Made by a program: the position numbers and the translations under genes. This document shows positions 7,827-58,201 of a stretch of DNA of 64,000 nucleotides, piece by piece. The notes under the pieces are model-generated. The model made no database searches. It was not told where the DNA came from and was given only the letters and a program-made list of their open reading frames with translations. Each line of letters begins with the position of its first letter. Position 1 is the first letter of the stretch. The DNA is taken from the IMG/VR virus record IMGVR_UViG_3300017963_000188, positions 186,001-250,000 of that record; one strand, written 5' to 3'.

Positions 7827-8666
7827 TTATTCGTCATCATCAAGACCTAACTCCACAAATCCTGAAGTACCTTCTGGAAGGATAGATTTGTTCTTGTTGG
7901 TCTTATCTGCTTTAAATTTGCATTCCCCAACATAAGGGCAAAACTTACAAGCCTTACTACTTGGGGTTGCCTTGAATTGACGCTTCTTTATCTTCTGCAT
8001 TACATCGATAATTTCTGCTTTCAATTCCTTCAGAGTATCGATAGTGAATTCTACTTCCAATAGAGGATCTTCTGGAAATCTATAGAACCAATACCATAAA
8101 GAGTTTGGCATTTTTCTATGCAAGAGGTAATAAGACAAAGCATACCAAAAGAGCTGTCTATGATCTAGATACCTGTCTTTATACTTGCTCCCTTTACCAT
8201 CAAATATCCTGATCTCACCATCACCTTTAAACACGAAATCAATTCGACCACCAATTTGATCAGCTTTGGTAATGTATGCATAGGTATTGACTTCAGATTT
8301 TGCATATGGAGCTAACAGTTTATAGTCTCTTACCGTATCGATACCATGATCTACAGCTACAATACATTCATCTATAATTAGCTGTTTCCCACCCTCATGT
8401 TCACCCCAAAAGATGTTCTTTTTAGCTACGATTTCGGCAAATACTTTGGGGACTTTATCTTTCAGGATAGTTCTGGCTTCTTTCCCTTTCCTCCAAATCT
8501 GGTCATTGTAAAACATTTCAAACATCTTCTGAACTACTGTACCATAAACAGTATTATACTCATCTTGCATGGTAATAGGTTTGTCCCTATTTATATTCTG
8601 TCTCAGATGCTTCAAAGGGCATTCAACATAATTTTTGAATGCATAAAATGTAAGGGCTCTAGGCAT
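7827..8666 (-). CDS. PD-(D/E)XK nuclease, AddB/RecB/Cas4-like with probable Fe-S staple
   Basis: ECP near the N-terminus, GGRIDF...IFDGKG, QLFWYA, C-terminal CKFCPY..EC. Confidence 0.85.
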   Translation of the reverse strand: MPRALTFYAFKNYVECPLKHLRQNINRDKPITMQDEYNTVYGTVVQKMFEMFYNDQIWRKGKEARTILKDKVPKVFAEIVAKKNIFWGEHEGGKQLIIDECIVAVDHGIDTVRDYKLLAPYAKSEVNTYAYITKADQIGGRIDFVFKGDGEIRIFDGKGSKYKDRYLDHRQLFWYALSYYLLHRKMPNSLWYWFYRFPEDPLLEVEFTIDTLKELKAEIIDVMQKIKKRQFKATPSSKACKFCPYVGECKFKADKTNKNKSILPEGTSGFVELGLDDDE

Positions 8667-9612
8667 TTTCAGCAGCCTCCAAGTAATGGTATATAGTGTC
8701 TTTCACCTCTTGAGCCAGCCCTAAAGATGAAATACTCTGTGTCAGTTTATCTTTTGGGTCCTCTGTAGATACTTTGATGAGATTCTCAATGAAATCTTCA
8801 ATCTTACGAGTCTCTTGTTGGACCTTTTCTTTACGTTCAAAATCAAAAATTTCTTTTGCTTCTCTCACCAATAAATCAATAGGAGTAACTTGGACATTCA
8901 CATCACCATCATCCACAGTGATCTCTATGAAACCTACACGAGGGGTGCGAGTAATGTCATCATATGTCAAAGCCCCCCTAGAGATAGCCCCAAGATTTAT
9001 GAAATGCTTACCTTCAACTTCTTGGATACCCTGGTCTTTATGTATATGACCGAGAACCCAAATGTCAGGGTCTAGTTCAGCAAGTTTCTTATAACTATAG
9101 AACTTCTCTCCTGGATATAATGGGAGATCCGCAACTGAACCATGGAACACTGCGATGAGTATCTTCTCATCACCTTTCTTGCATCTACTGAGCAATTCTT
9201 CATCCACATCTACACGATAATCAATACCAATTATACGAACATCACCAATTGTGATATCTTGCAGCCTATTGAATGTCTTGGTCTTGAACAAAACCCCTAG
9301 TGGTTGCTTATCAATAGTATCAACATTGCTATACATCACATCATGATTGCCAATAATAGCATACACTGGAACCTTGTACTGATTATGTAAAAGAGCCACA
9401 TCACCAGTCAGTTCATGACTGTTCTTTGTAGGTGCTTTCACATGATAGAAATCACCAGCATCAAGAATAGCATCACATTCATGGTCTACTGCTAATTTGT
9501 AAATCTGATCTAACTTATTAAGTATTGCTTCTTTGTAGTCATCGATCCTAGAGACAGGAGGTCTGTCAGAAAGATGGCAATCAGATCTAGTGATGAACCG
9601 ATATTTCTTCAT
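8659..9612 (-). CDS. sbcD: SbcD/Mre11-like metallophosphoesterase nuclease
   Basis: SDCH, AGDFYH, GNHD, HG and LGHIH calcineurin-like motifs. Adjacent to the Rad50 N-half. Confidence 0.88.
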   Translation of the reverse strand: MKKYRFITRSDCHLSDRPPVSRIDDYKEAILNKLDQIYKLAVDHECDAILDAGDFYHVKAPTKNSHELTGDVALLHNQYKVPVYAIIGNHDVMYSNVDTIDKQPLGVLFKTKTFNRLQDITIGDVRIIGIDYRVDVDEELLSRCKKGDEKILIAVFHGSVADLPLYPGEKFYSYKKLAELDPDIWVLGHIHKDQGIQEVEGKHFINLGAISRGALTYDDITRTPRVGFIEITVDDGDVNVQVTPIDLLVREAKEIFDFERKEKVQQETRKIEDFIENLIKVSTEDPKDKLTQSISSLGLAQEVKDTIYHYLEAAENA

Positions 9613-44794: not shown

Positions 44795-46072
44795 ATGGCA
44801 TTTCCAGAAGCCCCACATAATTTGAATGTGGTATCACCATATATCCCAAATGCATTGGATCTTAGATGGGATAATCCTGGTATTCTACCAGGGAATTCTC
44901 AGTTCAAGGTGCTTGGAGTCAATATTTATCGAGCCTTTGACAGTGAATTTGGTCCATTTCGTAAACTCAATGAAATACCTATTGGAGCTACGTTTTATCG
45001 TGATCAGGTACAGTTGAAAGTTGAGATTGATGAAGATGTATCAGATAATTACATCTCTAAAGGTACTCGTGAAGATGATAAATGGATATTCAGGGTGAAA
45101 CGATACCCTATCATGAAACCAGCTACTGATACTAATTTGAAAATAGCTGATCATGCCAAAGATGTTACAGTAAAGATTGATGGTGTAGAAGTAGTACCAT
45201 TTAAAGTGAAGGGGGATCTTGGTATTGTAGAGTTGGTGAATGGGCCTATTTTCAATCCGACTACTCAACGATTAGAACCACCAGTGCTCCCAACAGACAG
45301 TTCAGTAACGACTTGTACGTATAGATATCTATCCAATTCTTTATCTACAGCTATGAGTCAGAGGATTTTTTATCGTATCACAACGGTAGTAGAGGGCACA
45401 GGTTCAGGTGATGATGGGTACATTGAAACTCCAATGGAGAATACGTATCCTGTTTCAGCTCATGAAATTGAGAAGTTGGATTATATTTGGACAGAAGCTA
45501 TTAGACGTAATCGATGGATACTAGAGCAGGGTGGGGAAAGAGTTAAAGTGTTCTTAAAACGTCACATAGGAATTCAATGTCCTTGCTGGAGATCGCATAA
45601 GAACCAGCCCAAGAGTGATTGTAAGAGATGTTTTGGATCTGGTGTTTTGGGTGGGTATGACGGTCCTTATGATATGATTATAGCTCCAGATGAATCTTCA
45701 AAGAAAAAAGCTCAATCAGATATGGGTCGAAAGTTAGAGCATAGTTGGGAGGCATGGACAGGTCCTAGCCCTCTCCTTTCTCATCGTGATTTTATTGTAC
45801 GTCAGAATGGTGACCGATATACTATTGGAGCACCTTCAATCCCTTCAGCAAGAGGTTCTATACTACAACAACATTTTACAATGAACTACATTGATTCAGG
45901 AGATATTAGGTATTATGTCCCAGTCACTGGTACAGCATCTCTTGTATTCCCAGAGACTCGACTTCAAAGTGATGGGTCTAATGTGTATCCTCAGATTACT
46001 GAGAAATCCACTATTCCAGATGAAAGGGAACAACGAGGTCGTACCGTAGTTTGGGAAAATATTACCTACTAG
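44795..46072 (+). CDS. Putative neck / head-closure protein with FN3-like and Zn-finger segments
   Basis: PEAPHNL...LRWD...GVNIYRA, CPCW...CKRCFGSG..GGY, WTGPSPLL..RDFIV. Confidence 0.55.
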   Translation: MAFPEAPHNLNVVSPYIPNALDLRWDNPGILPGNSQFKVLGVNIYRAFDSEFGPFRKLNEIPIGATFYRDQVQLKVEIDEDVSDNYISKGTREDDKWIFRVKRYPIMKPATDTNLKIADHAKDVTVKIDGVEVVPFKVKGDLGIVELVNGPIFNPTTQRLEPPVLPTDSSVTTCTYRYLSNSLSTAMSQRIFYRITTVVEGTGSGDDGYIETPMENTYPVSAHEIEKLDYIWTEAIRRNRWILEQGGERVKVFLKRHIGIQCPCWRSHKNQPKSDCKRCFGSGVLGGYDGPYDMIIAPDESSKKKAQSDMGRKLEHSWEAWTGPSPLLSHRDFIVRQNGDRYTIGAPSIPSARGSILQQHFTMNYIDSGDIRYYVPVTGTASLVFPETRLQSDGSNVYPQITEKSTIPDEREQRGRTVVWENITY

Positions 46073-46079
46073 AATGTAA

Positions 46080-46589
46080 ATGAAATTTAGAATTCAACCA
46101 AATATTTTCACACCTGATCCGAAAGAACCAAAATTAAACCGTTTCTTTTTGGACCGTTTAGCACGAGATATGGTGAGGATTCTGAAGACAGAAATCAAAA
46201 AAGAATCCTTCAAAGCTCCAGCAACGGATTTAATTCGTTCTTGGAAATACTCTGTTAAGGGGCAAGACATAGTAATATGGTCTGACCATCCAGCTTTGAC
46301 AGGGGAGAAAGTTGAAGAAGAGGTAGAAGAAGAAAAGTTGGATCTTGATAATATTGACCTGCCTGATGATCCAAGAGAGGCTATGAAAGTATTACGTGCA
46401 ATACCAAATGTAGCTGTGATACAAGATGATGGTAAGATTGAAGTGAGGAAAGTGACAGCAAAAAAGATGGGGGATGAATGGGTATTCCCACCTCATAAAA
46501 GAACTGCATTTTTGGAACGAGCTAAAAGGTCAATTATGAAAATGATACGTAACAGGATTCAATCTAAGATACGAGAAGCAATAGGGTGA
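46080..46589 (+). CDS. Putative neck or tail-component protein
   Basis: LIRSWKY and W.FP....FLERAK resemble HK97 gp10-like morphogenesis proteins. Confidence 0.4.
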   Translation: MKFRIQPNIFTPDPKEPKLNRFFLDRLARDMVRILKTEIKKESFKAPATDLIRSWKYSVKGQDIVIWSDHPALTGEKVEEEVEEEKLDLDNIDLPDDPREAMKVLRAIPNVAVIQDDGKIEVRKVTAKKMGDEWVFPPHKRTAFLERAKRSIMKMIRNRIQSKIREAIG

Positions 46590-46593
46590 TGTT

Positions 46594-47244
46594 ATGGCAA
46601 AGATAGACTTAGACCGTGACCTTGTAGTCATAGGGAACATTGTGGGAGACCATAGAATAGATGATTTGGGAGTGACTGTGGGATATGATGAAGCGGTGCG
46701 TCTCACAGCAAAACAAGTATCAAAATCAAAAGATTTGTTCAGAGACATTAAAGATAAGAAACTTAGAGTAGATCGTAGGTTGTATGCTTCTTCAACAAAA
46801 GTTCCTGAGAAACCTGTGAAACCAAAAGAAGAATCATTACCATCTTTGCCTAAGCCTGTAGCTAAGAGAGTAACTCAAAACACAAGCTCTCCAGATCTTG
46901 AAGCTGTGAAATTTTTGGCTGCTGGGAATGCTAGGACTTTGGAGAATCTTACCCAGCTCTTAGGTGAGGTTGTATCAGAACTGAAAGATATGAAGAGTTC
47001 AGTAGGGAATGGTGTTGATAAAGATACTCTTCGTGAATTGTTACGAAGCATACAGATCCAATCAGGATCTGGGCAGGATATAATAGATACAGAAGCACCT
47101 CGATATATACCTTCAGACCTTTTAGGTGCTGAAAATGTAGTTTCTACAAAGGTCGATGTCAAATCAGAGAAGAAGAAGACTGGTAAGCTAGATAGCAATT
47201 TGAAGGCTTTGAAGGAACTAAGGGCTAAAAAAGAGAATGGTTAA
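46594..47244 (+). CDS. Hypothetical protein, candidate actin partner
   Basis: Globular N-terminus, Pro/Lys linker, helical middle, basic C-terminal helix LKALKELRAKK. Directly upstream of the actin gene. Confidence 0.6.
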   Translation: MAKIDLDRDLVVIGNIVGDHRIDDLGVTVGYDEAVRLTAKQVSKSKDLFRDIKDKKLRVDRRLYASSTKVPEKPVKPKEESLPSLPKPVAKRVTQNTSSPDLEAVKFLAAGNARTLENLTQLLGEVVSELKDMKSSVGNGVDKDTLRELLRSIQIQSGSGQDIIDTEAPRYIPSDLLGAENVVSTKVDVKSEKKKTGKLDSNLKALKELRAKKENG

Positions 47245-47434
47245 TCTTTTTATATATATCTGAATGTGATGGGCTTTCAGGGATGATGTTGCTCAAACTC
47301 TAGAATCTATAAGATTCTATGTTTATTATGTGGCAAATATTTACTAGACGGAGCCGATCATAAGATGTTATATATAGACCTTGGGAGAAGGTCGCAATTT
47401 ATGTTATGTAGCTAACGTCAAAGGAGAACACGAG

Positions 47435-48427
47435 ATGAGTAACTCAGGAGTTGGTCTAGATATAGGGACCATGAACATCATTTCTGCTCGTAAGAATGAC
47501 GAGGATGAACTAGTAGTCAAGAGGCTTAGAGATGCTTTTTTGGATCTTGAGCCTGATGCTAAGAAGATGCTCAAGCTTTCTGGAGTGAGTTATATAGAAT
47601 ACAAGGATAAGATTGTTATTGTTGGGGATACAGCTTTACATACTGCAAATATCTTCAAAAGAGATGCTCGTAGACCTCTATCAAAGGGTATCATTTCACC
47701 AGAAGAGGTTGATGCTGTTGAAATTTTGTCCATCATCATTAAGCAGGTGCTTGGTAAACCATCTGTTAAGAATGAGATTTGTTACTTCTCTGTGCCAGCC
47801 GAACCAATTGATGATGTTTCAAAAGATGTAATCTACCATACCGATGTATTCAAGAGAATTCTTAAAGAACTAGGGTATGAGCCTCAAGAATCAAATGAAG
47901 CCCTTTCAGTGATTTTGTCTGAATGTGCTCAGGAGAATTTTTCGGGTATTGCCTTGAGTTTTGGTAGTGGTATGGTCAATGTTGCTATGGCCTATCATAG
48001 CATGCTTTCGTTGGCATTTTCTATGTCTCGTGCTGGAGATTGGATTGATACTCAGGCAGGGAAAGCTCTAGGTCAAACTTCTTCTAGGATGTGTACCATC
48101 AAGGAAAAAGGTATTGATCTGAAAAACCCTAAAGATCGTAATGAAGAGGCAATAACCATTTATTATAAATCCTTGATTGAGGATGCTGTTAAGTATCTGG
48201 TGAAGAAGGTTGGTGAAATGGGAGAGTTGGATTTCCCAGAACCAATCCCTATTGTGTTGGCAGGTGGTACCTCGAAGATAGGCGGTTTTTTGGACGTGTT
48301 CAAAGAGATATTTGAACCCTATAAGGTCAAAATGAAAGTGGAAATCAGTGAAGTCCGAATGGCTGTGAATGTATTAACAAGTGTTTCAGAAGGGCTTCTA
48401 TTACAAGCTCTTCAAGAATATGAATAA
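47435..48427 (+). CDS. Actin-like ATPase (volactin/MreB/FtsA superfamily)
   Basis: Phosphate-1 GLDIGTMN, connect-1 NEAL, phosphate-2 LSFGSGMVN, AGDWID, adenosine VLAGGTSKIGG, connect-2 SVSEGL. AAGGAG SD supports start 47435. Confidence 0.9.
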   Translation: MSNSGVGLDIGTMNIISARKNDEDELVVKRLRDAFLDLEPDAKKMLKLSGVSYIEYKDKIVIVGDTALHTANIFKRDARRPLSKGIISPEEVDAVEILSIIIKQVLGKPSVKNEICYFSVPAEPIDDVSKDVIYHTDVFKRILKELGYEPQESNEALSVILSECAQENFSGIALSFGSGMVNVAMAYHSMLSLAFSMSRAGDWIDTQAGKALGQTSSRMCTIKEKGIDLKNPKDRNEEAITIYYKSLIEDAVKYLVKKVGEMGELDFPEPIPIVLAGGTSKIGGFLDVFKEIFEPYKVKMKVEISEVRMAVNVLTSVSEGLLLQALQEYE

Positions 48428-48438
48428 GGAGGATAGAT

Positions 48439-48702
48439 ATGGCACGTCGTTACAAAGGTATACTGTTTCCTGACACTTCTTTTGAGACTCCAGAGCATGG
48501 TATCCCAGGACAAGAAGGTAAGGCAAAGAAGAAGGCAAAGAAGCCTGCGGCAAAGCCTATTGAAGAAACCGAAACTCTCAGCTCTTCTGATTTGAGCAAG
48601 ATGAAGAAAGCTCAGGTAGAAGAAGAAGCAGAGAAGTTAGGGATTGACATAACTGATAAGACCAAAAAAGAATTGGTTGAAGAAATCTTGAATACCCAAT
48701 AA
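48439..48702 (+). CDS. Small protein with HeH/SAP/Rho-N-like helical motif
   Basis: LSKMKKAQVEEEAEKLGIDITDKTKKELVEEI. AGGAGG SD. Confidence 0.6.
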   Translation: MARRYKGILFPDTSFETPEHGIPGQEGKAKKKAKKPAAKPIEETETLSSSDLSKMKKAQVEEEAEKLGIDITDKTKKELVEEILNTQ

Positions 48703-49823
48703 TGTACTATTGGCTCACAAATGCAACCAAAAAGTTCCTAATTAGTGAACTTAGAGAGTCGTTCGCTGATCATCCGTATTTCTCTAAGATTCAGGTCCAA
48801 GATCGGTTTTCTTTCAAAGAACGTCCTCAATTTGCTTTGATTATAAAGGGATCTAGTGGTGATAGGATAGTGTTATCACCACAGAATTTTGTAGGTATGG
48901 TGCATAGTTATTGTATGCTTGCATCTATTGATGGACATAAAGGACAGTTCTTAGAATGGATACGAGAAGATACTCAGGCTCTATATGATAATGATAATGT
49001 GTTCCCTACCGAGCCTGGGATATATGTTCTTGAACTTCTTGATGTTGATGATGAGAAAGAAGGTGGTACTGTAATTGTGGATGTTTTCCGGTCTATATTT
49101 GATGAGAATCTCATAACATTTGAGACTGGGTTAGAAACTGAAGCCTATCTTGATAATGAACCTATCACAAAAAGTCTTCGTCTTCGAGTAGATAATAATG
49201 ATTATGTCTATATTTTAGAGGAAGGTGTTGATTATGACCAGGATGGTAATAAAATCACTTTTCTCAGTCCTTTTGTGGAGAAAACTACTATCCTAGCAGA
49301 TTACAAAGTTTTGACTGGGAGTAATGGTCCACATACTTTCAATTCTTTTGGTTCGAATAATTCTATACTTCCAGGAGTAGTTCTAGCTTTCGGACATAAA
49401 TTGCTAAAAGGTGACAAGTGTGCTGTAGTTATAACGGATCGTAGAGGGCCAGCATTCAATGAATATGGTGGTCATTATACAATGAGCTTTGACATAGATG
49501 CCATTGCAGTAAAGGATTCTGAACAAGCAGAGCAAGTAGCTGACGATGCTGTGATGACTTTTCTGAAGAAAAAATCTCAATTTGAGGATGTTGGCCTGAC
49601 AATGGTAGATGGTCCTTCTTTGGGTGGTGAGTCTGAAGAAGTCTATGATGAAGAAGGGGATGAATATTATTTCTCAAATAGTTTTTCTATATCTTTCCAA
49701 ACAGATTGGTCTTATTATGAGCCTCTGCCACTGCAAGTCTCTCAAGTAGTGGTTTCTACGGTCTATGAACAGATCGTCACGAGATCTGAAAGACGTGAGT
49801 TAGATATAGAAAAGTTTTTTTAA
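48702..49823 (+). CDS. Putative tail terminator/completion protein
   Basis: ERPQFALII...G, SFDIDAIA..DSEQAEQVAD, SISFQTDW. Upstream of the sheath gene. Confidence 0.45.
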   Translation: MYYWLTNATKKFLISELRESFADHPYFSKIQVQDRFSFKERPQFALIIKGSSGDRIVLSPQNFVGMVHSYCMLASIDGHKGQFLEWIREDTQALYDNDNVFPTEPGIYVLELLDVDDEKEGGTVIVDVFRSIFDENLITFETGLETEAYLDNEPITKSLRLRVDNNDYVYILEEGVDYDQDGNKITFLSPFVEKTTILADYKVLTGSNGPHTFNSFGSNNSILPGVVLAFGHKLLKGDKCAVVITDRRGPAFNEYGGHYTMSFDIDAIAVKDSEQAEQVADDAVMTFLKKKSQFEDVGLTMVDGPSLGGESEEVYDEEGDEYYFSNSFSISFQTDWSYYEPLPLQVSQVVVSTVYEQIVTRSERRELDIEKFF

Positions 49824-49878
49824 CCTTTTTATGTCATCTCTATTTGTAGATGATGGATTCGTAGCAGCGAGGGAAACC

Positions 49879-50295
49879 ATGCCAGTATATAAATATGAAT
49901 GTAGCGGATGTGGTCTAGAATTTGACCGGCTTGTGTCTAGTTCCGAGGGGAGTGAGAAGACTTCCTGTGTGAATTGTGAAGAAGAAGCCACTAAAATTGT
50001 GGCTAAGGCTAGTTTTAATTTTTCATCTTCTCGTGCCCAAGGTGAAACTGGGGTGCATGATATTGACTATCCTGTTGTGGATAAGGCAGTGGGTCGTTCT
50101 GCTGAGAAGAGATGGATCAAGTTTGAAGAGCGTCGTAAAGCTGAAGACCATGCTAGGAGCGATTATGATAGTCCCTATCTAGGCAAAGTGCCTATTGGGG
50201 ATCATACTGACGGATATTATCGAGTACCTCAAGAAAGACTTGAGGTACGTCGTGAAGCAGCCAAAGAATTACATGAGGCTTTGGTTGGAAATTAA
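49879..50295 (+). CDS. FmdB-family zinc-ribbon protein
   Basis: MPVYKYECSGCG..F..L.....CVNC...A.K. Start moved to 49879. Confidence 0.8.
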   Translation: MPVYKYECSGCGLEFDRLVSSSEGSEKTSCVNCEEEATKIVAKASFNFSSSRAQGETGVHDIDYPVVDKAVGRSAEKRWIKFEERRKAEDHARSDYDSPYLGKVPIGDHTDGYYRVPQERLEVRREAAKELHEALVGN

Positions 50296-50342: not shown

Positions 50343-53300
50343 ATGACACCATTAGGTATGGGACCTTTCGAGTCACACGTTTTCCCTGGGGTCTATACTA
50401 GAACTGTCCGTGAACGAGGTGGTGGACCTCCTGCGGGCATCAGACCCTTAGTAATCATAGGTGTAGGACAGGAATACCTTGAAGTAACCGATTTGGAACT
50501 GGTTCGAGGTTCGTCTGCTACTGTAGATCAGCGTATCGTCAATGAGGATGTGAGTGAAAGATTTGTTTTGGATGAAACAAATCCTGATAATCCTGTCCTT
50601 GGTGCTGCTGATGGGGTGCATTCTAAGTTCAAGGTACGTAACCTTCCTATCGTGACTGGAGAAGGTAGAGGTGAAACCTCTACTAGTCCTACCCATGTGG
50701 AGGTTACTGTAGACGGTACTCTAGTAGCAGTAGCTCAAGTGAATGGTACTAAGGGTGAGGTTACTCTTCAGTCCATTCCAGCAGAAGGATCTACAGTTCT
50801 TTGTACCTACTACTATAATCGCACCGATACTCAGGTCACTGAAGATGTGTCTGATCAGGTTAGTGAAGAATATGCCCTGTTGTATTCTAGCCCAGAGACA
50901 TTTGAAGTTACTGAAGGTATCAATGACACCTTCAAGTTGTCTGTGAATGGTGGTTCAGAGAAGACTGTCACTTTAACGGCAGGGGCTGGTAGAACAGCTC
51001 TTCAGATCATTGCTGATATCAATGCAGCTCAAGTAACAGGTCTGACAGTTTCAGTGGATCTTGATGAACAAGGTCAAAACAGAATCGAACTGAAAGCTGC
51101 TAGTGAGATTGAGATTGGAAATGGTAATGCTAATGCTCTCTTGGGATTTGCAGCAGGTCAGACTTCTGGGAGGAATAAATCTTTCAGAACATTCCAGAGA
51201 CCAATCGTAGATGGATCTAATGGTGGTATCACATCAACAGATCCTACCGATGTGACAGTGGCAGTTAATGGTACAGACCAAACTCCAGTGTCAATTGATG
51301 GTACGAATGGTTGGGTGACGTTATCAGTACCACCTCCAGTAGGAGCTACTGTTGCAGTCACATACTATTTCAATACATATCAAGATACTTTCGATTATCT
51401 ACCAAATGATGACATTACTGAAGTGGGTAATTGTGGGTATGCTCCAGGACGTAGGGATTACTTAAATCTTTCTGATTTTGTGGTCAGTGATGGGAAGATT
51501 TATTGGGGTACTTCTGTATCTGTTACAGGTGGTGACCGTTCTGCTGGAGCAGAGCCATTTGATGATACTCAGATTTCAACTCTGTTGATTGATAATCGTA
51601 TCTACATGGCTGAATGTGAACGATATGTTGATACATCAGTCACTCCTTCAGTGGTTTCTGATAATGAGTTTGTTCTTCCAATGCCTCCAACAACGGGCAA
51701 TGGTAGGAATTCTCCATTAGGTTCAAGTCTATATGAGACTGTTTCAGAAGGTCGTATTGATCTCCCTACAAATCGTCCCGATCTTGTCATTGCATATCGT
51801 GGACGTGATGTTGTAGATGCTCTCAATAATGGTCCTATAGATGTTCTAGAAGTTGACTCTTCTACTCGTAGAGTCAAGTTAGGTGGAACGGTACCTCCTG
51901 GGGACTTGGTATTCTGTACGTTCTGGTACAATCGTATCACAGATGACACTTTCACTCTTGAATGTCTGAATGAAGGTGTTTCAGGTACTGGTAAGTATAG
52001 TGTCTTGTCATCTTTGACAGGTACTAATCAGTATGCTGTTCTCTTTGCTGGGAAGAGTGGTGGGTTGGCTGAGACAGTTCAATGGCCTTCAGGTGTTGAG
52101 ACTGTACCAGATGCAATTCATGTTGGTGGTGACCCTGTTTTAGAGATTGTTACAGTTACGTTCCATGATTCTACTGGAACCCCTGCAATTTTCACAAACA
52201 CTGAACCTGGACCATATTCTTGCTACGATGGTGCTTCCGACTTGTTCTATTATAATGTAGACAATATTGGGATGACCAATGTAGACCTAAGCAATAGTGG
52301 TGCAGCTTCAATAGTAAGTGGTGCTTGTGGGACTACTATTGATTGTAGTGGTGGGAATAATCTCGTTGAATTTACAGTTGATGGTGTGTCGGTACCAGTT
52401 ACTCTCGGAACATCAGCTACTGAAGCAATTGCTGATATCGTGACAGCTATTAACTTAGCTTCAAATGGTACAGCTCTTAGTGCAGATATTGCTGAGACCA
52501 TTGGTACGGGGGCTCTTACCAGACTTCGGATCTTCTCCCCCACTGCTCCTACTGGTCCAGATGATGTTTCTACTGTAGTTGTAGAATCTGGCACCGCAAA
52601 CACACCTCTTCTTCTCACAGAAGGTGACGAGAGCACTGGTATTGAAGGTGCTGTGGCATTGCCAGCTACTTTACTCAGCTCTAATGCTGAAAGTTATGCT
52701 ATCACTGCTGGTGTGAACGATATTTTCCGTCTCACCATTGATGGTGTTCCTTATGAGGTCAGCCTCACAGCCGGTACTCGTACTGCTGCCCAGATTGCTA
52801 CAGACATCAATACGGAAACAGGTGCTTCCAATGCTGGATCTGTGACCGTAGGTGCTAGCAATTATCTCAGGCTTTATTCCAATATCTCTAGTCCAGATAG
52901 TAAGATCATCATTGGTGATGGTACTGCAAATACTACTCTTGGGTTCACTAGTAATCAGACTGGGGATCAAAGACTGCCTGGAGCTGAAGAAATTTCAGTG
53001 GTCTTGAATGATGATACTACATTTAAGACTCGGGCTAGAGCAAGCACCGTAACTCAAGCTGGTGTTGGAGTGTTCTTGAGGATTGAGTCTCTGACCATTG
53101 GTACTACATCATCTATCGCTTTTGGTACAGGTACTGACAGTGCCTTCAATGATACTGGACTTGGGATTGTACCAGGGACATCTGGAGATGTTGGTGAAGG
53201 TGCTGGATCTTACTTTGATGTGACTTCTTCACATTCAGAAGGTTCTGGTACTGGTACAAGCAACATTGGTTATCCGGGACAAACCTATACAGATGAGGTC

Positions 53301-54566
53301 ACGGGTCTTAGATTTACAGTTCTAGAATCTACAACAGGATCATATACTGATGGGGAATCTTTCGGGATGTCTGTAGTTGATGAGATCCCAACTAATGCAA
53401 ATACTCCTGTCAGGACTATCCCTGGTGTTGAAATGACAGTAGCAAATACTGTAAATGTCAGTGTTGGTGATACTTCTATTGTCCGTACTTTCGATAAGTC
53501 CGGTAATGAACCATCTATCGGTGACTTCTATTACATCAGTTATAGTTATACCAAAGATAGTTGGGACACAGAACTGTTCACTTCTGATGAGATGCCTGTC
53601 ATTAAGTCCCTATATGGTGAAGTCTCAGTCGAAAACAGATTGTCTCTGGCTGCCGACATTGCCTTCAAGAATGGTATCCCATATCTTGGCTTGAAGCAGG
53701 TTCCAAAGGTTGAAGATTCAAGTCAGGCTTCTGTATCTAGTTTCATTGAAGCTATCAAAGAACTTGAGCAGCCTCTCCCAGGGGATGTGAAGCCTTACGT
53801 TATCGTTCCATTGACGACAGAAGCTGAAGTTATTAGCTATCTTGAGCAGCATTGTGCTATCCAGTCCAGTCCACGATATGGTAACAGAAGGATTGGTTTC
53901 TTCGGCTTTGCAAGTGGTACTAAGCCTACAGATGCTCAGGCTACAGCTAAGGCTATTGGTTCTCATCGTATGAGGACAGTATATCCTGATTCAGCTATCG
54001 TTGGAATCGAGAACGAGATTGGGGAAGAGACTGAACAGATTGTTGATGGTACTTACTTGGCAGTAGCTCTGGCAGCTTCTTGTCTCAATCCTATCAATGA
54101 CTTTGCTCAGCCTTATACCAATAGGACTCTGCAAGGATTTAAACGTCTTGGTCGTCAGATCAATACTGTTGAACAGAGTCAGACAGCTATTTCAGGTATC
54201 AATGTTCTCCAGGATACTGCTACTGCAATTGAAGTTATGCAGGGCTTCACTACTGATATGTCTGATCTGCTCACTCAGATTCCGACCATTACTCAGATTG
54301 ATGACCAGATGCATGTCAACATGACTAAGCGTCTGAAGAAGTTTACTGGTGTGAAGTTCTTACCTTCACTTCCTGCTGAGGTTCAGTCTGAGGCCAATGG
54401 TGTGTTGAGAGCAATGAAGGAAGCTAATCTAATAGCAGATTATGAGCCTGCGGTTGCTACGGCACATCCTGATGATCCAACATTGATCTTGGTTGAAGCA
54501 TATTATGCTCCAATCTTCCCGAACCTCTACATTCTTGTGACACAGCATGTAAGGATTCGCATCTAA
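50343..54566 (+). CDS. Contractile tail sheath protein, unusually large (1407 aa)
   Basis: N-terminal FPGVYTRT, sheath C-domain (H...S......RIGF, VYPD, Y.AVALA, GINVL, TTD, VEAYYAPIFP), with many inserted beta domains. Confidence 0.88.
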   Translation: MTPLGMGPFESHVFPGVYTRTVRERGGGPPAGIRPLVIIGVGQEYLEVTDLELVRGSSATVDQRIVNEDVSERFVLDETNPDNPVLGAADGVHSKFKVRNLPIVTGEGRGETSTSPTHVEVTVDGTLVAVAQVNGTKGEVTLQSIPAEGSTVLCTYYYNRTDTQVTEDVSDQVSEEYALLYSSPETFEVTEGINDTFKLSVNGGSEKTVTLTAGAGRTALQIIADINAAQVTGLTVSVDLDEQGQNRIELKAASEIEIGNGNANALLGFAAGQTSGRNKSFRTFQRPIVDGSNGGITSTDPTDVTVAVNGTDQTPVSIDGTNGWVTLSVPPPVGATVAVTYYFNTYQDTFDYLPNDDITEVGNCGYAPGRRDYLNLSDFVVSDGKIYWGTSVSVTGGDRSAGAEPFDDTQISTLLIDNRIYMAECERYVDTSVTPSVVSDNEFVLPMPPTTGNGRNSPLGSSLYETVSEGRIDLPTNRPDLVIAYRGRDVVDALNNGPIDVLEVDSSTRRVKLGGTVPPGDLVFCTFWYNRITDDTFTLECLNEGVSGTGKYSVLSSLTGTNQYAVLFAGKSGGLAETVQWPSGVETVPDAIHVGGDPVLEIVTVTFHDSTGTPAIFTNTEPGPYSCYDGASDLFYYNVDNIGMTNVDLSNSGAASIVSGACGTTIDCSGGNNLVEFTVDGVSVPVTLGTSATEAIADIVTAINLASNGTALSADIAETIGTGALTRLRIFSPTAPTGPDDVSTVVVESGTANTPLLLTEGDESTGIEGAVALPATLLSSNAESYAITAGVNDIFRLTIDGVPYEVSLTAGTRTAAQIATDINTETGASNAGSVTVGASNYLRLYSNISSPDSKIIIGDGTANTTLGFTSNQTGDQRLPGAEEISVVLNDDTTFKTRARASTVTQAGVGVFLRIESLTIGTTSSIAFGTGTDSAFNDTGLGIVPGTSGDVGEGAGSYFDVTSSHSEGSGTGTSNIGYPGQTYTDEVTGLRFTVLESTTGSYTDGESFGMSVVDEIPTNANTPVRTIPGVEMTVANTVNVSVGDTSIVRTFDKSGNEPSIGDFYYISYSYTKDSWDTELFTSDEMPVIKSLYGEVSVENRLSLAADIAFKNGIPYLGLKQVPKVEDSSQASVSSFIEAIKELEQPLPGDVKPYVIVPLTTEAEVISYLEQHCAIQSSPRYGNRRIGFFGFASGTKPTDAQATAKAIGSHRMRTVYPDSAIVGIENEIGEETEQIVDGTYLAVALAASCLNPINDFAQPYTNRTLQGFKRLGRQINTVEQSQTAISGINVLQDTATAIEVMQGFTTDMSDLLTQIPTITQIDDQMHVNMTKRLKKFTGVKFLPSLPAEVQSEANGVLRAMKEANLIADYEPAVATAHPDDPTLILVEAYYAPIFPNLYILVTQHVRIRI

Positions 54567-56500: not shown

Positions 56501-56644
56501 TTAGTTCTCCTGTCTCTATCAGTAGATAACTCTCACTAAGAAGATAAATAAAAAAATTATAGAAATTTTCACTATAAAAATTTAGAGAATTGTAGTATAG
56601 AACTATAGGGCATGGATAATCTATGCTCGTAACAGGAGGTGGCT

Positions 56645-58201
56645 ATGAACTTTAAATTCAATATTCCAGAGCTTGATGGCATTATAGAGGCTGTATATGA
56701 GTCTCTAGAAATGAATCGTCAAATCCTGGAGAATCAAAGGGTTGGTCTAGAGAATCAGAAGATTCTCCAGGAAAATCTGAAATCTGTGGCTAATGCTTTG
56801 GGTGGTTCTGGTGTTCGACCTGAACTTAAAGAGTTGCAGAGTGTCGAAACACCGGAGAGAAAACCAAAACCTAAGTCCAAACCAAAAGCCCTAAAGCCAA
56901 AGTCAGCATCTGCTGAGGTTTCATGTTCAGAACCTCAACATGACCATGACCATGACCATGACCATGATGAGGAACAATGTATTGTGCCAGACTGTTCAGA
57001 GCCTTTCTATTCAAAAGGTTTATGTATAAGGCACTACCAATCACATCGATTAGCCCAGAAAAAGAGCCCTGAGTCTGAGCAAAGGTGGCTCAAGAAGTAT
57101 AAGGTCACTTCTGAGGATATTGAGAAGGGTAAAGCTCGAAGGAAAAGGGGGTCACGTAAGTCTGCTGTGAAAACCCCAGCAAAGAATGAAGCTAAGAGTG
57201 CTGACACAGGAGGTCAAGAAAAAGGGGAGGGAAACTACCCAAAAGCACGTAGGGAGACATCTGAGGCAGCGGTGTCTCCCAGTGCAGATATCTGCCTCAT
57301 AAATGATTGTGGTAGGAAAGCTCATTCAAGAGGGCTTTGTTCAGCTCATTATCAGCAGTATCGAGAAGCTACAAAGAAAGGTGGGGAGTCAGAGTTCTTT
57401 GATGAGCATGACATTGAAGTTCTCCCAAGAGGGAAGAAAGGGAGGCGTACAAAAGAAGATGTAGATCCAACTCCCAATGTCGATATGAGTAGGGTTCTTG
57501 AAGATAAGAAATCTTACAAGGAGGTGAAAGAGCTGAAATTGACCTCTGTGTCCATTTCAGAGATCACTAAAGAGCTTGACTCAAGTTTGGATAGGAAGTT
57601 CCCTGAGCTTGAATACTGGGTCTGGAGGGACAGTTTAAATGGTGTTCGTAGTGATGGACGTGTTCTTCTAGATCTAGAAAAGAATAGCCTTCTCTTCTTT
57701 TCCAAAAAGGATATGGCTTGGGAAGGTCAAGTGTGGGAACGAGAACTCATCGTGAGTTTGGCTGATAAATTCCAGGTCAGGTATATCAGGATAGATGATG
57801 ATTTGAAGGTTCTGACCTCGAATTTCAGGAATTATTATGCTCTGCCAGAAGAATCTGATGGGAGGTTTTTACTGAGGGCAAAGCTTCGTATGGATCGTCC
57901 AGATGTGTTCTGGGAGGTAGGTGACTTGTTTTATATCCACAGCTTCAGGATCGATGGTTCCGTGATTGATGCTGTGTATGCATGGCTAGTGAAGCCTCCA
58001 TGCTTTGATGCCCCATCAGAGGATGATCCTTTGTGGGAAGAATGGAACAATGCTACTAAGAACATCTGTGCCTTTGCAGGAGCTGATAAGATTGAGAAGT
58101 GGTTCGAGCTTCTTTTCAACGGGGTAATTCCTGTTGGAGCACATGATAAGTTGCGGGAAATTAGTTCTTCCCAGATTGAATCGGCTCTAGAGAAAGATTG
58201 A
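56645..58201 (+). CDS. Protein with two CxxxxC...GLCxxHY zinc-finger modules and an HD repeat
   Basis: CIVPDCSEPFYSKGLCIRHY and CLINDCGRKAHSRGLCSAHY. AGGAGG SD before ATG 56645. Confidence 0.7.
   Translation: MNFKFNIPELDGIIEAVYESLEMNRQILENQRVGLENQKILQENLKSVANALGGSGVRPELKELQSVETPERKPKPKSKPKALKPKSASAEVSCSEPQHDHDHDHDHDEEQCIVPDCSEPFYSKGLCIRHYQSHRLAQKKSPESEQRWLKKYKVTSEDIEKGKARRKRGSRKSAVKTPAKNEAKSADTGGQEKGEGNYPKARRETSEAAVSPSADICLINDCGRKAHSRGLCSAHYQQYREATKKGGESEFFDEHDIEVLPRGKKGRRTKEDVDPTPNVDMSRVLEDKKSYKEVKELKLTSVSISEITKELDSSLDRKFPELEYWVWRDSLNGVRSDGRVLLDLEKNSLLFFSKKDMAWEGQVWERELIVSLADKFQVRYIRIDDDLKVLTSNFRNYYALPEESDGRFLLRAKLRMDRPDVFWEVGDLFYIHSFRIDGSVIDAVYAWLVKPPCFDAPSEDDPLWEEWNNATKNICAFAGADKIEKWFELLFNGVIPVGAHDKLREISSSQIESALEKD
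56939..56968 (+). repeat. CATGAC hexamer repeat, 5 copies (HDHDHDHDHD)
   Basis: CATGAC x4 followed by CATGAT. Confidence 0.95.

Follow-up and report, generated by a model that had tools for sequence, protein, structure and literature searches.

The 64,000-nt stretch analysed here (the window) is part of a 358-kb uncultured huge phage from IMG/VR, and it contains an actin-like gene flanked by an upstream 216-aa gene and a downstream 87-aa gene, within a block of conserved genes (Table 1). We refer to the other genes of this block as p425, p169, p373, p154 and p1407, and to the 216-aa protein as the partner, in the sense of a conserved neighbour whose contact with the actin is inferred. The preliminary description of this locus had reported these three ORFs, the complete set of actin-fold ATPase motifs, the neck and tail gene context and a T-rich motif ahead of the actin gene, and we found that this observation holds, apart from the details given below.

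Table 1. Features of the actin locus (positions are those of the window)
Feature	Position	Strand	Length	Description
Head maturation protease	25503			Virion-arm context
p425	44795-46072	+		Conserved virion-arm gene bounding the block on the left
p169	46080-46589	+		Conserved small gene just upstream of the partner; possibly a neck or connector protein
Partner	46594-47244	+	216 aa	Conserved actin partner and candidate adaptor
Intergenic gap	47245-47434	+	190 bp	Gap between the partner and actin genes
T-rich sequence	47245			Lies in the intergenic gap
Imperfect inverted repeat	47251-47275 and 47352-47376		25 nt	Lies in the intergenic gap
Actin	47435-48427	+	330 aa	Volactin-family actin-like ATPase
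HeH-like protein	48439-48702	+	87 aa	Lysine-rich, C-terminal HeH/Rho_N-like motif; lineage-specific slot
p373	48702-49823	+		Conserved gene bounding the block on the right; tail-terminator-like (lead only)
p154	49831-50295	+		Conserved zinc-ribbon protein
p1407	50343-54566	+		Giant conserved virion protein; tail-sheath-like (lead only)

A volactin-family actin in huge phages

The actin ORF starts at an ATG preceded by an AAGGAG Shine-Dalgarno site 8 nt upstream, and its translation contains the motifs that had been listed as volactin-like, namely GLDIGTMNIISAR, ALHTANIFKRDARRP, FSVPAEPID, FSGIALSFGSGMVNV, RAGDWID and IYYKSL. The resemblance to volactins proposed in the preliminary description was confirmed by a Pfam search, in which the protein matched PF25216 (Volactin) with an E-value of 9e-70 and 236.1 bits against a cutoff of 35, covering profile positions 3-321 of 321. 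In contrast, the MreB/Mbl family (PF06723) scored 15.5 bits, below its cutoff of 27, no ParM or ALP family hit was obtained at E <= 0.1, and there was no FtsA hit. All of the top 120 database relatives carry PF25216, and the chromosomal volactins retrieved in a genome scan with 10 sequences are 37-45% identical to the phage protein, with values of 37-42% for archaeal members from Halobacteria, Archaeoglobaceae and Thermoplasmatota (37-40% for Halobacteria). PHROGs has no family for the actin, and a direct sequence search of the PDB gave nothing at E<1; no volactin structure has been solved. The AF2 model is confident (pLDDT 96.1, pTM 0.93), and the best Foldseek matches of this predicted fold are MamK, MreB, BeeR, crenactin and actin, with TM-scores of 0.66-0.74 at 14-18% identity (14-18% also to MreB structures). 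The closest of these folds, BeeR (0.74), MamK (0.71) and MreB (0.68), are all filament formers, although in them phosphate 2 starts with Asp instead of Ser. The phosphate 1, connect 1, phosphate 2 and adenosine motifs are present, with the family-specific S-x-G-x-G-M-x-N version of phosphate 2, and residues D9, G11, T12, E155, S175, G177, G179, D202, D205, G277 and G278 are invariant in 75 phage and 68 cellular homologs. N182 is also identical in phage, archaeal and bacterial members, whereas MreB has D at position 175. Furthermore, some homologs carry inteins next to the phosphate-2 motif, as happens at conserved and functionally important sites.

A recent capture of a host gene and a lack of co-occurring neighbors had been named beforehand as outcomes that would contradict the phage actin, and we examined both. 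In 75 distinct syntenic phage relatives the actin forms one clade, with an SH-aLRT of 89 in a tree of 146 rows and UFBoot 94/SH-aLRT 88 in a tree of 51 rows, and it was monophyletic in 94% of bootstrap trees. This clade is nearest to a few bacterial copies, and the family is separated from E. coli MreB and FtsA, which sit on very long branches outside it, by a 99* branch. The only GenBank phage hits were two huge uncultured phages. The gene keeps one slot in the virion arm, in the order p425, p169, partner, actin, p373, p154 and p1407, and across 57 phages it is the best conserved gene of this block, with a median identity of 52% compared to 44, 37, 32, 26 and 24% for the others. Its GC content is the same as in the flanks. 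Because the 75 distinct phage sequences form one deep clade with conserved synteny, the actin is not a recent host acquisition.

The neck, tail-completion and sheath context, however, rests on leads only. p425 (77 loci; 303 relatives in IMG/VR) matches phrog_1004, annotated as 'virion structural protein', at 3.8e-7. p373 (76 loci) resembles SP10_terminator, Gp37, Phage_tail_terminator_9 and T4-gp15, its nearest named clusters in the ESM Atlas (scores 0.76-0.86, TM up to 0.54-0.66 by target). In the case of p1407, the ESM Atlas feature neighbors include Phage_sheath_1, DUF2586 and DUF3383 clusters (score 0.88-0.91), with weak DUF2460 and Flagellin_IN matches and 38-65% identity among relatives. 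p154 (72 loci) contains a Zn_ribbon_8 domain (7e-11), and p169 (81 loci) has no Pfam or PDB relative. Profile searches of the PDB with p373, p425, p169 and p1407 gave nothing below E 0.07, so that the terminator and sheath labels depend on sub-threshold look-alike searches.

The upstream partner and other neighbors of the actin gene

According to its AF2 model, the partner has an N-terminal beta-rich domain (residues 10-60), a disordered linker, a long helix (102-136), a Y-I-P-S motif (172-175) and a C-terminal basic helix (199-215, LDSNLKALKELRAKK), the latter in agreement with the preliminary description; this helix is amphipathic and ends in a Lys/Arg run. A single-sequence database search with the partner found only one weak relative, but an HMM applied to the fetched loci found one such ORF on the same strand upstream of the actin in 90 phage loci and in none of 73 chromosomal loci. 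Among the phages it was missing only at truncated contig ends and in one non-syntenic phage. In a reciprocal scan started from p425, 75 of 75 actin-bearing loci also carried the partner, 73 of them colinear, and one related phage had lost both genes together. An HMM of the C-terminal 34 aa, built from phages only, picked out as best-scoring ORF the gene adjacent to volactin in 45 of 73 archaeal and bacterial loci, belonging to several phyla, against a chance rate of 0.07, although a binomial P for this test overstates the significance because many of the cellular loci are related to each other. This pattern points to an actin-plus-partner cassette that is family-wide. The protein is built modularly, as the same tail is attached to a Cys-rich N-terminus in the bacterial sister clade and to the beta-rich domain in phages. 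No Pfam, PHROG or PDB relative of the partner was found. A Foldseek search with the partner model gave no significant match in the PDB (best E 0.43; lambda gpFI C-domain at probability 0.33), and the best matches in BFVD, a DUF2635 protein (E 2e-3) and phage G gp158 (E 6e-3), are leads and not identifications. A search among the other window proteins for the tail motif or the partner's N-terminal domain, aimed at finding a cargo, found none.

The 87-aa protein had been proposed as a second partner, but this is not supported. Its HeH/SAP-like assignment has only weak support (Rho_N E 0.005, below threshold; phrog_3281 1.4e-6, matching the same tail), and an HMM detected it only in four loci of the same phage. 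Its C-terminal 39 aa are 46% identical to the 98-aa ORF of the nearest relative, while in other phages this slot is empty or holds unrelated ORFs. The T-rich motif as a recurring, promoter-like element is not supported either, as it gave two matches at up to three mismatches against 0.71 expected, 15 of 100 shuffles did as well, and sigma-70-like sites are not enriched. The intergenic inverted repeat gave a non-significant RNA fold (z = -1.9) and no Rfam match, and in many relatives the partner and actin genes abut or overlap, so this gap is not a conserved feature. Only short two-copy chance repeats were found in positions 45900-49000, with no centromere-like array.

A possible phage actin cytoskeleton

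The interpretation given in the preliminary description, a late-expressed volactin-type filament system with its neighbors acting as adaptors that positions capsids or replicating DNA or remodels host shape, is therefore only partly supported: the phage origin, the volactin type and the upstream neighbor, which behaves as a dedicated partner or adaptor, are supported. Our analysis establishes that the protein is a volactin-family actin-fold ATPase by sequence and predicted structure, with an intact nucleotide site, vertically inherited at one position of the virion-morphogenesis arm, where it is the most conserved gene and is paired with the upstream protein at the loci described above. ATPase activity, polymerization, expression timing, the contact between actin and partner and the role of the filament are inferences. 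In this view, which we consider somewhat more likely than not, both genes would form a two-gene cytoskeleton module of a clade of huge, probably bacterial, phages. The actin would polymerize with ATP into dynamic filaments in the infected cell, as does Haloferax volactin, whose filaments touch the membrane by their tips and whose binding factors are unknown (PMC10869688). The C-terminal helix of the partner, together with the preceding F/Y-I-P-S motif, would dock on the actin, most plausibly in the hydrophobic cleft at the filament end in the way ParR docks on ParM, and its phage-specific N-terminal domain and coiled coil would bind a cargo. Because the genes sit between neck-like and tail-terminator/sheath-like genes, the most likely job is the spatial organization of assembly or maturation of very large virions, such as moving or anchoring capsids, tails or the assembly site. 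However, the phage that lacks the cassette shows that it is not strictly required for virion assembly. The 87-aa protein would be a lineage-specific accessory at most.

Other explanations appear less likely. A ParMRC/AlpAC-type DNA-positioning system, in which the partner would be a DNA-binding adaptor coupling the huge replicating phage genome or a pseudolysogenic episome to a pushing actin filament, is suggested by the similarity of the gene pair to type II partition systems and to AlpC/AlpA of prophage CGP3 (PMC4446434), by the fusion of some bacterial volactins to an HU DNA-binding domain and by the HeH/Rho_N-like protein. We consider it unlikely because there is no iterated repeat and in many relatives no intergenic space, the cassette lies about 25 kb inside the virion arm and not in the replication arm at 1-21 kb, the partner's N-terminal domain shows no RHH or HTH match by Pfam, PDB profile or Foldseek, and the HeH protein is not conserved. 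Equally doubtful is that the filaments change host shape or size, or hijack the envelope or division machinery, to make room for very large virions, with the partner anchoring them to the membrane. Haloferax volactin acts in cell-shape transitions, the amphipathic basic helix resembles membrane-targeting helices, and halobacterial partners end in a helix resembling such a sequence, for example LLDRVRSWLKRN. Nevertheless, this would leave the element contacting the actin unidentified, conservation of the helix motif across hosts with very different envelopes fits better with a protein-protein contact with the conserved actin, and the location among neck and tail genes is not explained.

A non-polymerizing ASKHA-fold ATPase, Hsp70- or EutJ-like, chaperoning neck or tail assembly with the partner as co-chaperone or substrate, seems very unlikely. 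The Hsp70 nucleotide-binding domain and EutJ appear among the Foldseek hits at E-values similar to the actins and the gene sits between structural genes, but the TM-scores for BiP and EutJ are only 0.54-0.58, the protein has no substrate-binding domain, and the one characterized member of the volactin family polymerizes in vivo (PMC10869688). Finally, a recently captured MreB, FtsA or ParM without a phage-specific role has nothing in its favor beyond the shared actin fold and is refuted by the Pfam results and the trees.

Compared to volactin of Haloferax volcanii (VolA, HVO_2015), the phage protein belongs to the same family, has identical nucleotide-site residues including the Ser in phosphate 2, and shares the short helix motif in an adjacent gene, but it is encoded within the virion arm of a huge phage with a probably bacterial host, in a separate clade and with a phage-specific N-terminal domain in its partner, and a role in the disk/rod transition is unlikely to apply. 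The ParM/ParR/parC and AlpC/AlpA systems are functional analogies, with an actin-fold ATPase encoded next to a small modular adaptor whose C-terminal helix is expected to dock on the filament, and AlpC is the precedent for a phage-borne actin. The phage protein is not a member of those families by its Pfam matches, its candidate adaptor gene lies upstream instead of downstream and lacks a recognizable DNA-binding fold at the N-terminus of its product, there is no centromere array, and the genes are located among virion and not replication or partition genes. PhuZ and TubZ of jumbo phages are likewise comparable only in function, as phage-encoded cytomotive filaments that organize the infected cell (nucleus centring, capsid trafficking), but they have a tubulin fold and belong to a different phage lineage and genomic context; PhuZ phages are cultured, whereas this clade is known only from metagenomes. 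Our literature searches for a phage volactin or a huge-phage actin, including the founding huge-phage paper and a 2026 jumbo-phage review, gave no description of this system.

The only well-studied cytoskeleton of very large phages is the tubulin PhuZ, and the known phage actins (AlpC and ParM-like proteins of phage-plasmids) belong to small temperate elements and serve DNA replication or partition. Here, an actin of a different family, first characterized in 2024, is a near-universal and strongly conserved gene of an environmentally widespread clade of huge phages (222-303 contigs in IMG/VR alone, with genomes up to about 0.6 Mb), located among virion genes together with a putative dedicated partner. 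As a more tentative possibility, volactins in haloarchaea, other archaea, several bacterial phyla and these phages could all work as a two-component machine, in which a short helix motif (D/E-D/E-x-x-x-A-L-K/R-x-L-K/R) of the adjacent gene's product docks on the actin and exchangeable N-terminal domains select the cargo. The huge phages would have taken over this machine once, attached a virion-linked domain to it and used actin filaments to organize the assembly of giant virions, which would be the first actin-based counterpart of the PhuZ spindle. The pair is a concrete and easily cloned two-protein system for asking how giant virions are organized in a bacterial cell, and, as the putative docking motif recurs next to cellular volactins, it also nominates the so far unknown volactin-binding factors in the genetically tractable Haloferax volcanii.

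A volactin-family actin in a conserved block of virion genes

The observation made in the preliminary description, that three co-oriented ORFs lie here with an actin-like protein in the middle, held (see the table of features), and all the motifs that it had named for the middle protein are present in the translation. The resemblance of this protein to volactin, noted there, has now been tested and is correct. The Pfam Volactin model (PF25216) matches the 330-aa protein at E 9e-70, with 236 bits against a cutoff of 35 and over profile positions 3-321 of 321, while MreB_Mbl reaches only 15.5 bits, below its cutoff of 27, and no ParM or FtsA model matches. A sequence search of the PDB found no related chain. 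The gene starts at an ATG that is preceded by AAGGAG, and its GC content matches that of its flanks.

Coordinates of the features described in the text (positions refer to the window unless another sequence is named)
Feature	Sequence	Position	Strand	Remark
Replication and repair arm	window	1-21000	-	
Partner gene	window	46594-47244	+	216 aa
Partner residues 1-65	window	46594-46790	+	
TCTTTTTATATATAT	window	47245		
Imperfect inverted repeat	window	47251-47275 and 47352-47376		25 nt, 72% complementary, in the 190-bp gap before the actin gene
Volactin-family actin gene	window	47435-48427	+	330 aa
Small downstream ORF	window	48439-48702	+	87 aa
Zn_ribbon_8 (FmdB-like) protein gene	window	49831-50295		conserved in 72 phage loci
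HNH endonuclease gene	window	56639-58201		520 aa, inside the virion arm
Divergent volactin gene	L002 (LR756511.1)	7998-9017		595-kb phage
Site without the partner-actin pair	L222 (IMGVR_UViG_3300025150_000003)	8172-9543		two unrelated small ORFs
ORF with a Cys-rich, transposase-like C-terminus	L036 (Halobellus rufus)	between ~4291 and 5992		416 aa, between the partner gene and volactin

AlphaFold2, run with a 50-sequence alignment, gave a very confident model of the actin (pLDDT 96.1, pTM 0.93), and its nearest solved structures are all actin-like filament formers, namely BeeR (TM 0.74), MamK (0.71) and MreB (0.68), followed by crenactin and actin, at 14-18% identity, whereas Hsp70 domains and EutJ score lower. 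In an alignment of 75 phage, 46 archaeal and 22 bacterial homologues, the residues of phosphate 1 (D9, G11, T12), connect 1 (E155), phosphate 2 (S175, G177, G179, N182), the G-D-x-x-D pair (D202, D205) and the adenosine motif (G277, G278) are essentially invariant, their assignment to the classical actin/Hsp70 motifs resting on established knowledge of the superfamily. The Ser at position 175, where MreB has Asp, is a hallmark of the whole family.

The exact protein lies on IMG/VR contigs of up to 358 kb, and among 50,697 GenBank phage records only two uncultured huge phages of 485 and 595 kb have a relative. The window has two arms. The replication and repair arm carries three clamp-loader genes of bacterial type (DNA pol III gamma/tau, delta and delta' types), RecA, a RecD2-like helicase, a class II (B12) ribonucleotide reductase with a TSCPD domain, a PD-(D/E)XK nuclease and an SbcCD-like pair, while the plus-strand virion arm begins with a head maturation protease and contains the actin gene about 25 kb inside it. 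The HNH endonuclease gene within this second arm may be a mobile element. The bacterial-type replication genes and the Shine-Dalgarno site suggest a bacterial host, although this is an inference.

The family is widespread. It has 1,018 clusters at 50% identity with E <= 1e-3 in a 1.8-billion-protein library and more than 2,000 clusters at 90% identity, many of them on contigs of 100-400 kb, and IMG/VR holds 222 relatives on contigs of up to 618 kb. Some homologues (the database proteins P0124, P0125, P0126 and P0128) are interrupted by inteins with LAGLIDADG, HNH or Hint domains at query residues about 175-207, next to phosphate 2, and inteins typically sit at conserved, functionally important sites. 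Domain fusions also occur, as seen in ESM Atlas clusters and in proteins P0166, P0121, P0134 and P0139: HU (Bac_DNA_binding)-volactin in Acidobacteriota, volactin fused to Wzz/GNVR and a ParA-like tyrosine-kinase module (P0166), and long N-terminal extensions with no Pfam match.

In the related phage loci the actin lies in the same colinear block, formed by p425 (which matches a PHROG 'virion structural protein'), p169 (a small conserved gene), the partner, the actin, a variable small ORF, p373, p154 (the Zn_ribbon_8 protein) and p1407. The ESM Atlas places p373 nearest to tail-terminator families and p1407 nearest to tail-sheath families, but at scores that count as leads only, and apart from the Zn_ribbon_8 assignment none of the flanking genes has a PDB or Pfam relative, so their identities remain uncertain. 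Seven contigs binned into MAGs named Thermoplasmata, uncultured bacterium, Actinomycetota, Methylobacter, Legionellales, KSB1 and Betaproteobacteria (loci L010-L015 and L061) group in the phage clade. Of these, L011-L014 carry the full block, L015 and L061 part of it, and L010 the end of the partner gene abutting the actin, and they are likely binning contaminants from huge phages, though some could hint at hosts. When we started instead from p425, which has 303 relatives in IMG/VR, 75 of the 80 best loci contained both the actin and the partner and 73 were strictly colinear. Four of the other five are cut by contig ends, while the fifth, the related phage L222, has p425, p169 and p373 but two unrelated small ORFs where the partner and actin should be, a natural joint deletion or replacement in which the pair was lost together. 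Furthermore, across the 57 phages that have all six genes, the actin is the best conserved, with a median identity to the window of 52%, compared to 44% for p425, 37% for p373, 32% for p154, 26% for p169 and 24% for the partner.

Phylogeny of phage and cellular volactins

A scan of one genome per prokaryotic species found 356 relatives. Chromosomal copies are 37-45% identical to the window protein and occur in Halobacteria (including complete genomes), Archaeoglobaceae, Thermoplasmatota, Planctomycetota, Omnitrophota, Acidobacteriota, Chloroflexota and Desulfosarcina variabilis, and none of these loci has the phage neighbours. In a 146-row tree the 75 distinct syntenic phage sequences form one clade (SH-aLRT 89), and in a more careful 51-row tree the clade has UFBoot 94 / SH-aLRT 88 and is recovered in 94% of bootstrap trees. 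Its sister, with 100/97 support, is a small group from Desulfosarcina, where the gene sits among ordinary metabolic genes, a 264-kb 'Clostridium' MAG contig and Fidelibacterota, and the archaeal members lie further away. Because the MreB root sits on a very long branch, these trees do not resolve the direction of transfer between phage and bacteria. However, a recent capture of a host MreB or FtsA gene, which had been set beforehand as a result that would speak against the phage system, is excluded. The second huge phage with a volactin, L002 (LR756511.1), has a 30%-identical protein outside this clade with no shared synteny, suggesting an independent acquisition, so that phages would have acquired the gene at least twice.

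The neighbouring proteins and a shared helix motif

An HMM seeded with nine upstream proteins finds exactly one ORF in each of 90 phage loci, always on the same strand upstream of the actin. In many loci the two genes abut, and in the rest the partner lies 0.4-2.5 kb upstream. None was found in the 73 chromosomal loci (L016-L089 except L061), the five syntenic phage loci without a hit are truncated at the contig edge, and the non-syntenic L002 also lacks it. The 75 distinct partner sequences are only about 15-27% identical overall but share one architecture, for which AF2 predicts a small beta-rich N-terminal domain (residues 10-60, modelled with confidence at pLDDT about 96), a disordered linker, a long helix (102-136), an F/Y-I/L-P-S/T/D motif, an acidic spacer of about 30 residues and a C-terminal helix (199-215) ending in Lys/Arg, with the consensus D-D-A-A-x-A-L-R/K-A-L/M-R/K-K-K. 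No relatives of this family were found in Pfam, PHROGs or the PDB. The best structural look-alikes of the partner, all sub-significant, are small phage proteins: a DUF2635 protein of a myovirus (E 2e-3), phage G gp158 and the lambda gpFI C-domain. These alignments span 68-96 columns, their position in the partner not being listed, and if they cover the N-terminal domain (residues 1-65) it is possible that this domain derives from a virion-module protein.

We then built an HMM from the last 34 residues of phage partners only and searched all 3,980 six-frame ORFs of at least 60 aa in the 73 cellular loci. In 45 loci the best-scoring ORF is the same-strand gene directly adjacent to the volactin gene, against a chance rate of about 7% per locus, which gives a binomial P of about 3e-33, although this figure overstates the significance because many of the loci are related. 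The signal nevertheless recurs in independent lineages: in Halobacteria (loci L036-L087) as 'VDDQTAKLKELREQ', in versions of ~300 aa that usually have a second, tandem copy 'VDDAVxGLRGLQGG' and a terminal amphipathic helix; in Planctomycetota (L016-L027) as 'NALDRLKAMR' or 'DKLAKLREAR'; in Chloroflexota (L033) as 'AEAVAALRKLK'; and in one Thermoplasmatota clade (L048, L068 and L082), where the gene lies downstream, as 'DDSTNALRALRNKQ'. In Halobellus rufus (L036) the additional ORF listed in the table splits an otherwise adjacent pair. The bacterial sister clade shares the 'FIPS/N' motif and a C-terminal helix at the same spacing, though the helix scores below the motif HMM, but it has a Cys-rich N-terminus in place of the phage domain. 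All these data indicate that the pair of an actin and a partner with a putative docking helix is an old unit, and that the partner is modular. No other protein in the window carries the helix motif or the partner's N-terminal domain.

By contrast, the downstream 87-aa protein, also proposed as a partner, is not a core one. Its C-terminal 37 residues give a sub-threshold Rho_N/SAP-like match (E 0.005) and also match the tails of several PHROG families, but an HMM finds it only in copies of the same phage. The nearest relative, whose actin is 67% identical, has a 98-aa ORF sharing only the C-terminal 39 residues at 46% identity, and other phages have unrelated ORFs or nothing in that slot. The T-rich sequence TCTTTTTATATATAT, which had been taken as a copy of a motif preceding the actin, is not repeated above chance, and sigma-70-like sites are not enriched. 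The predicted RNA fold of the inverted repeat upstream of the actin gene is only marginally better than shuffles and not significant (z = -1.9), it has no Rfam match, and in many relatives the gap that contains it does not exist. A search for a centromere-like repeat array found none.

Proposed function

The interpretation in the preliminary description, a phage actin filament system with both neighbours acting as adaptors, was therefore supported in part. We consider as demonstrated the family membership, the intact nucleotide site, the strong purifying selection, the vertical inheritance at a fixed position in the virion arm, the obligate pairing with a modular partner and the partner motif shared across domains. 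ATP-dependent polymerisation, in turn, is inferred by homology to Haloferax volactin, docking of the partner's C-terminal helix on the actin is inferred by analogy with ParR and ParM and from the co-conservation of the motif with the actin, and a cargo bound by the phage-specific N-terminal domain is likewise an inference. The genomic position argues for a role in organising virion assembly, but DNA positioning and host reshaping remain possible, and a non-polymerising chaperone role is less likely. On balance we regard the filament-plus-adaptor mechanism as a whole as more probable than not, and we are less confident about any specific cargo.

Phage-borne cytoskeletal proteins are known (the tubulins PhuZ and TubZ, and the actin-like AlpC), volactin is known from haloarchaea, and database-derived cluster labels already tag some viral proteins as 'Volactin domain-containing'. 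However, to the best of our knowledge, this system has not been described previously: we found no mention of it among the papers on volactin, of which only the founding one was read and contains neither the word phage nor virus (PMC10869688), in the founding huge-phage paper, in a comparative jumbo-phage review, in a June 2026 jumbo-phage review, or by full-text searches of the literature. What differs here is that a volactin-family actin, with a dedicated candidate adaptor, is fixed in the virion module of a clade of huge phages. Moreover, the volactin paper states that volactin-binding factors are unknown and does not mention the neighbouring gene, so that the proteins encoded next to cellular volactin genes are candidates for these factors in Haloferax, and a by-product of this work is a candidate binding partner for cellular volactins.
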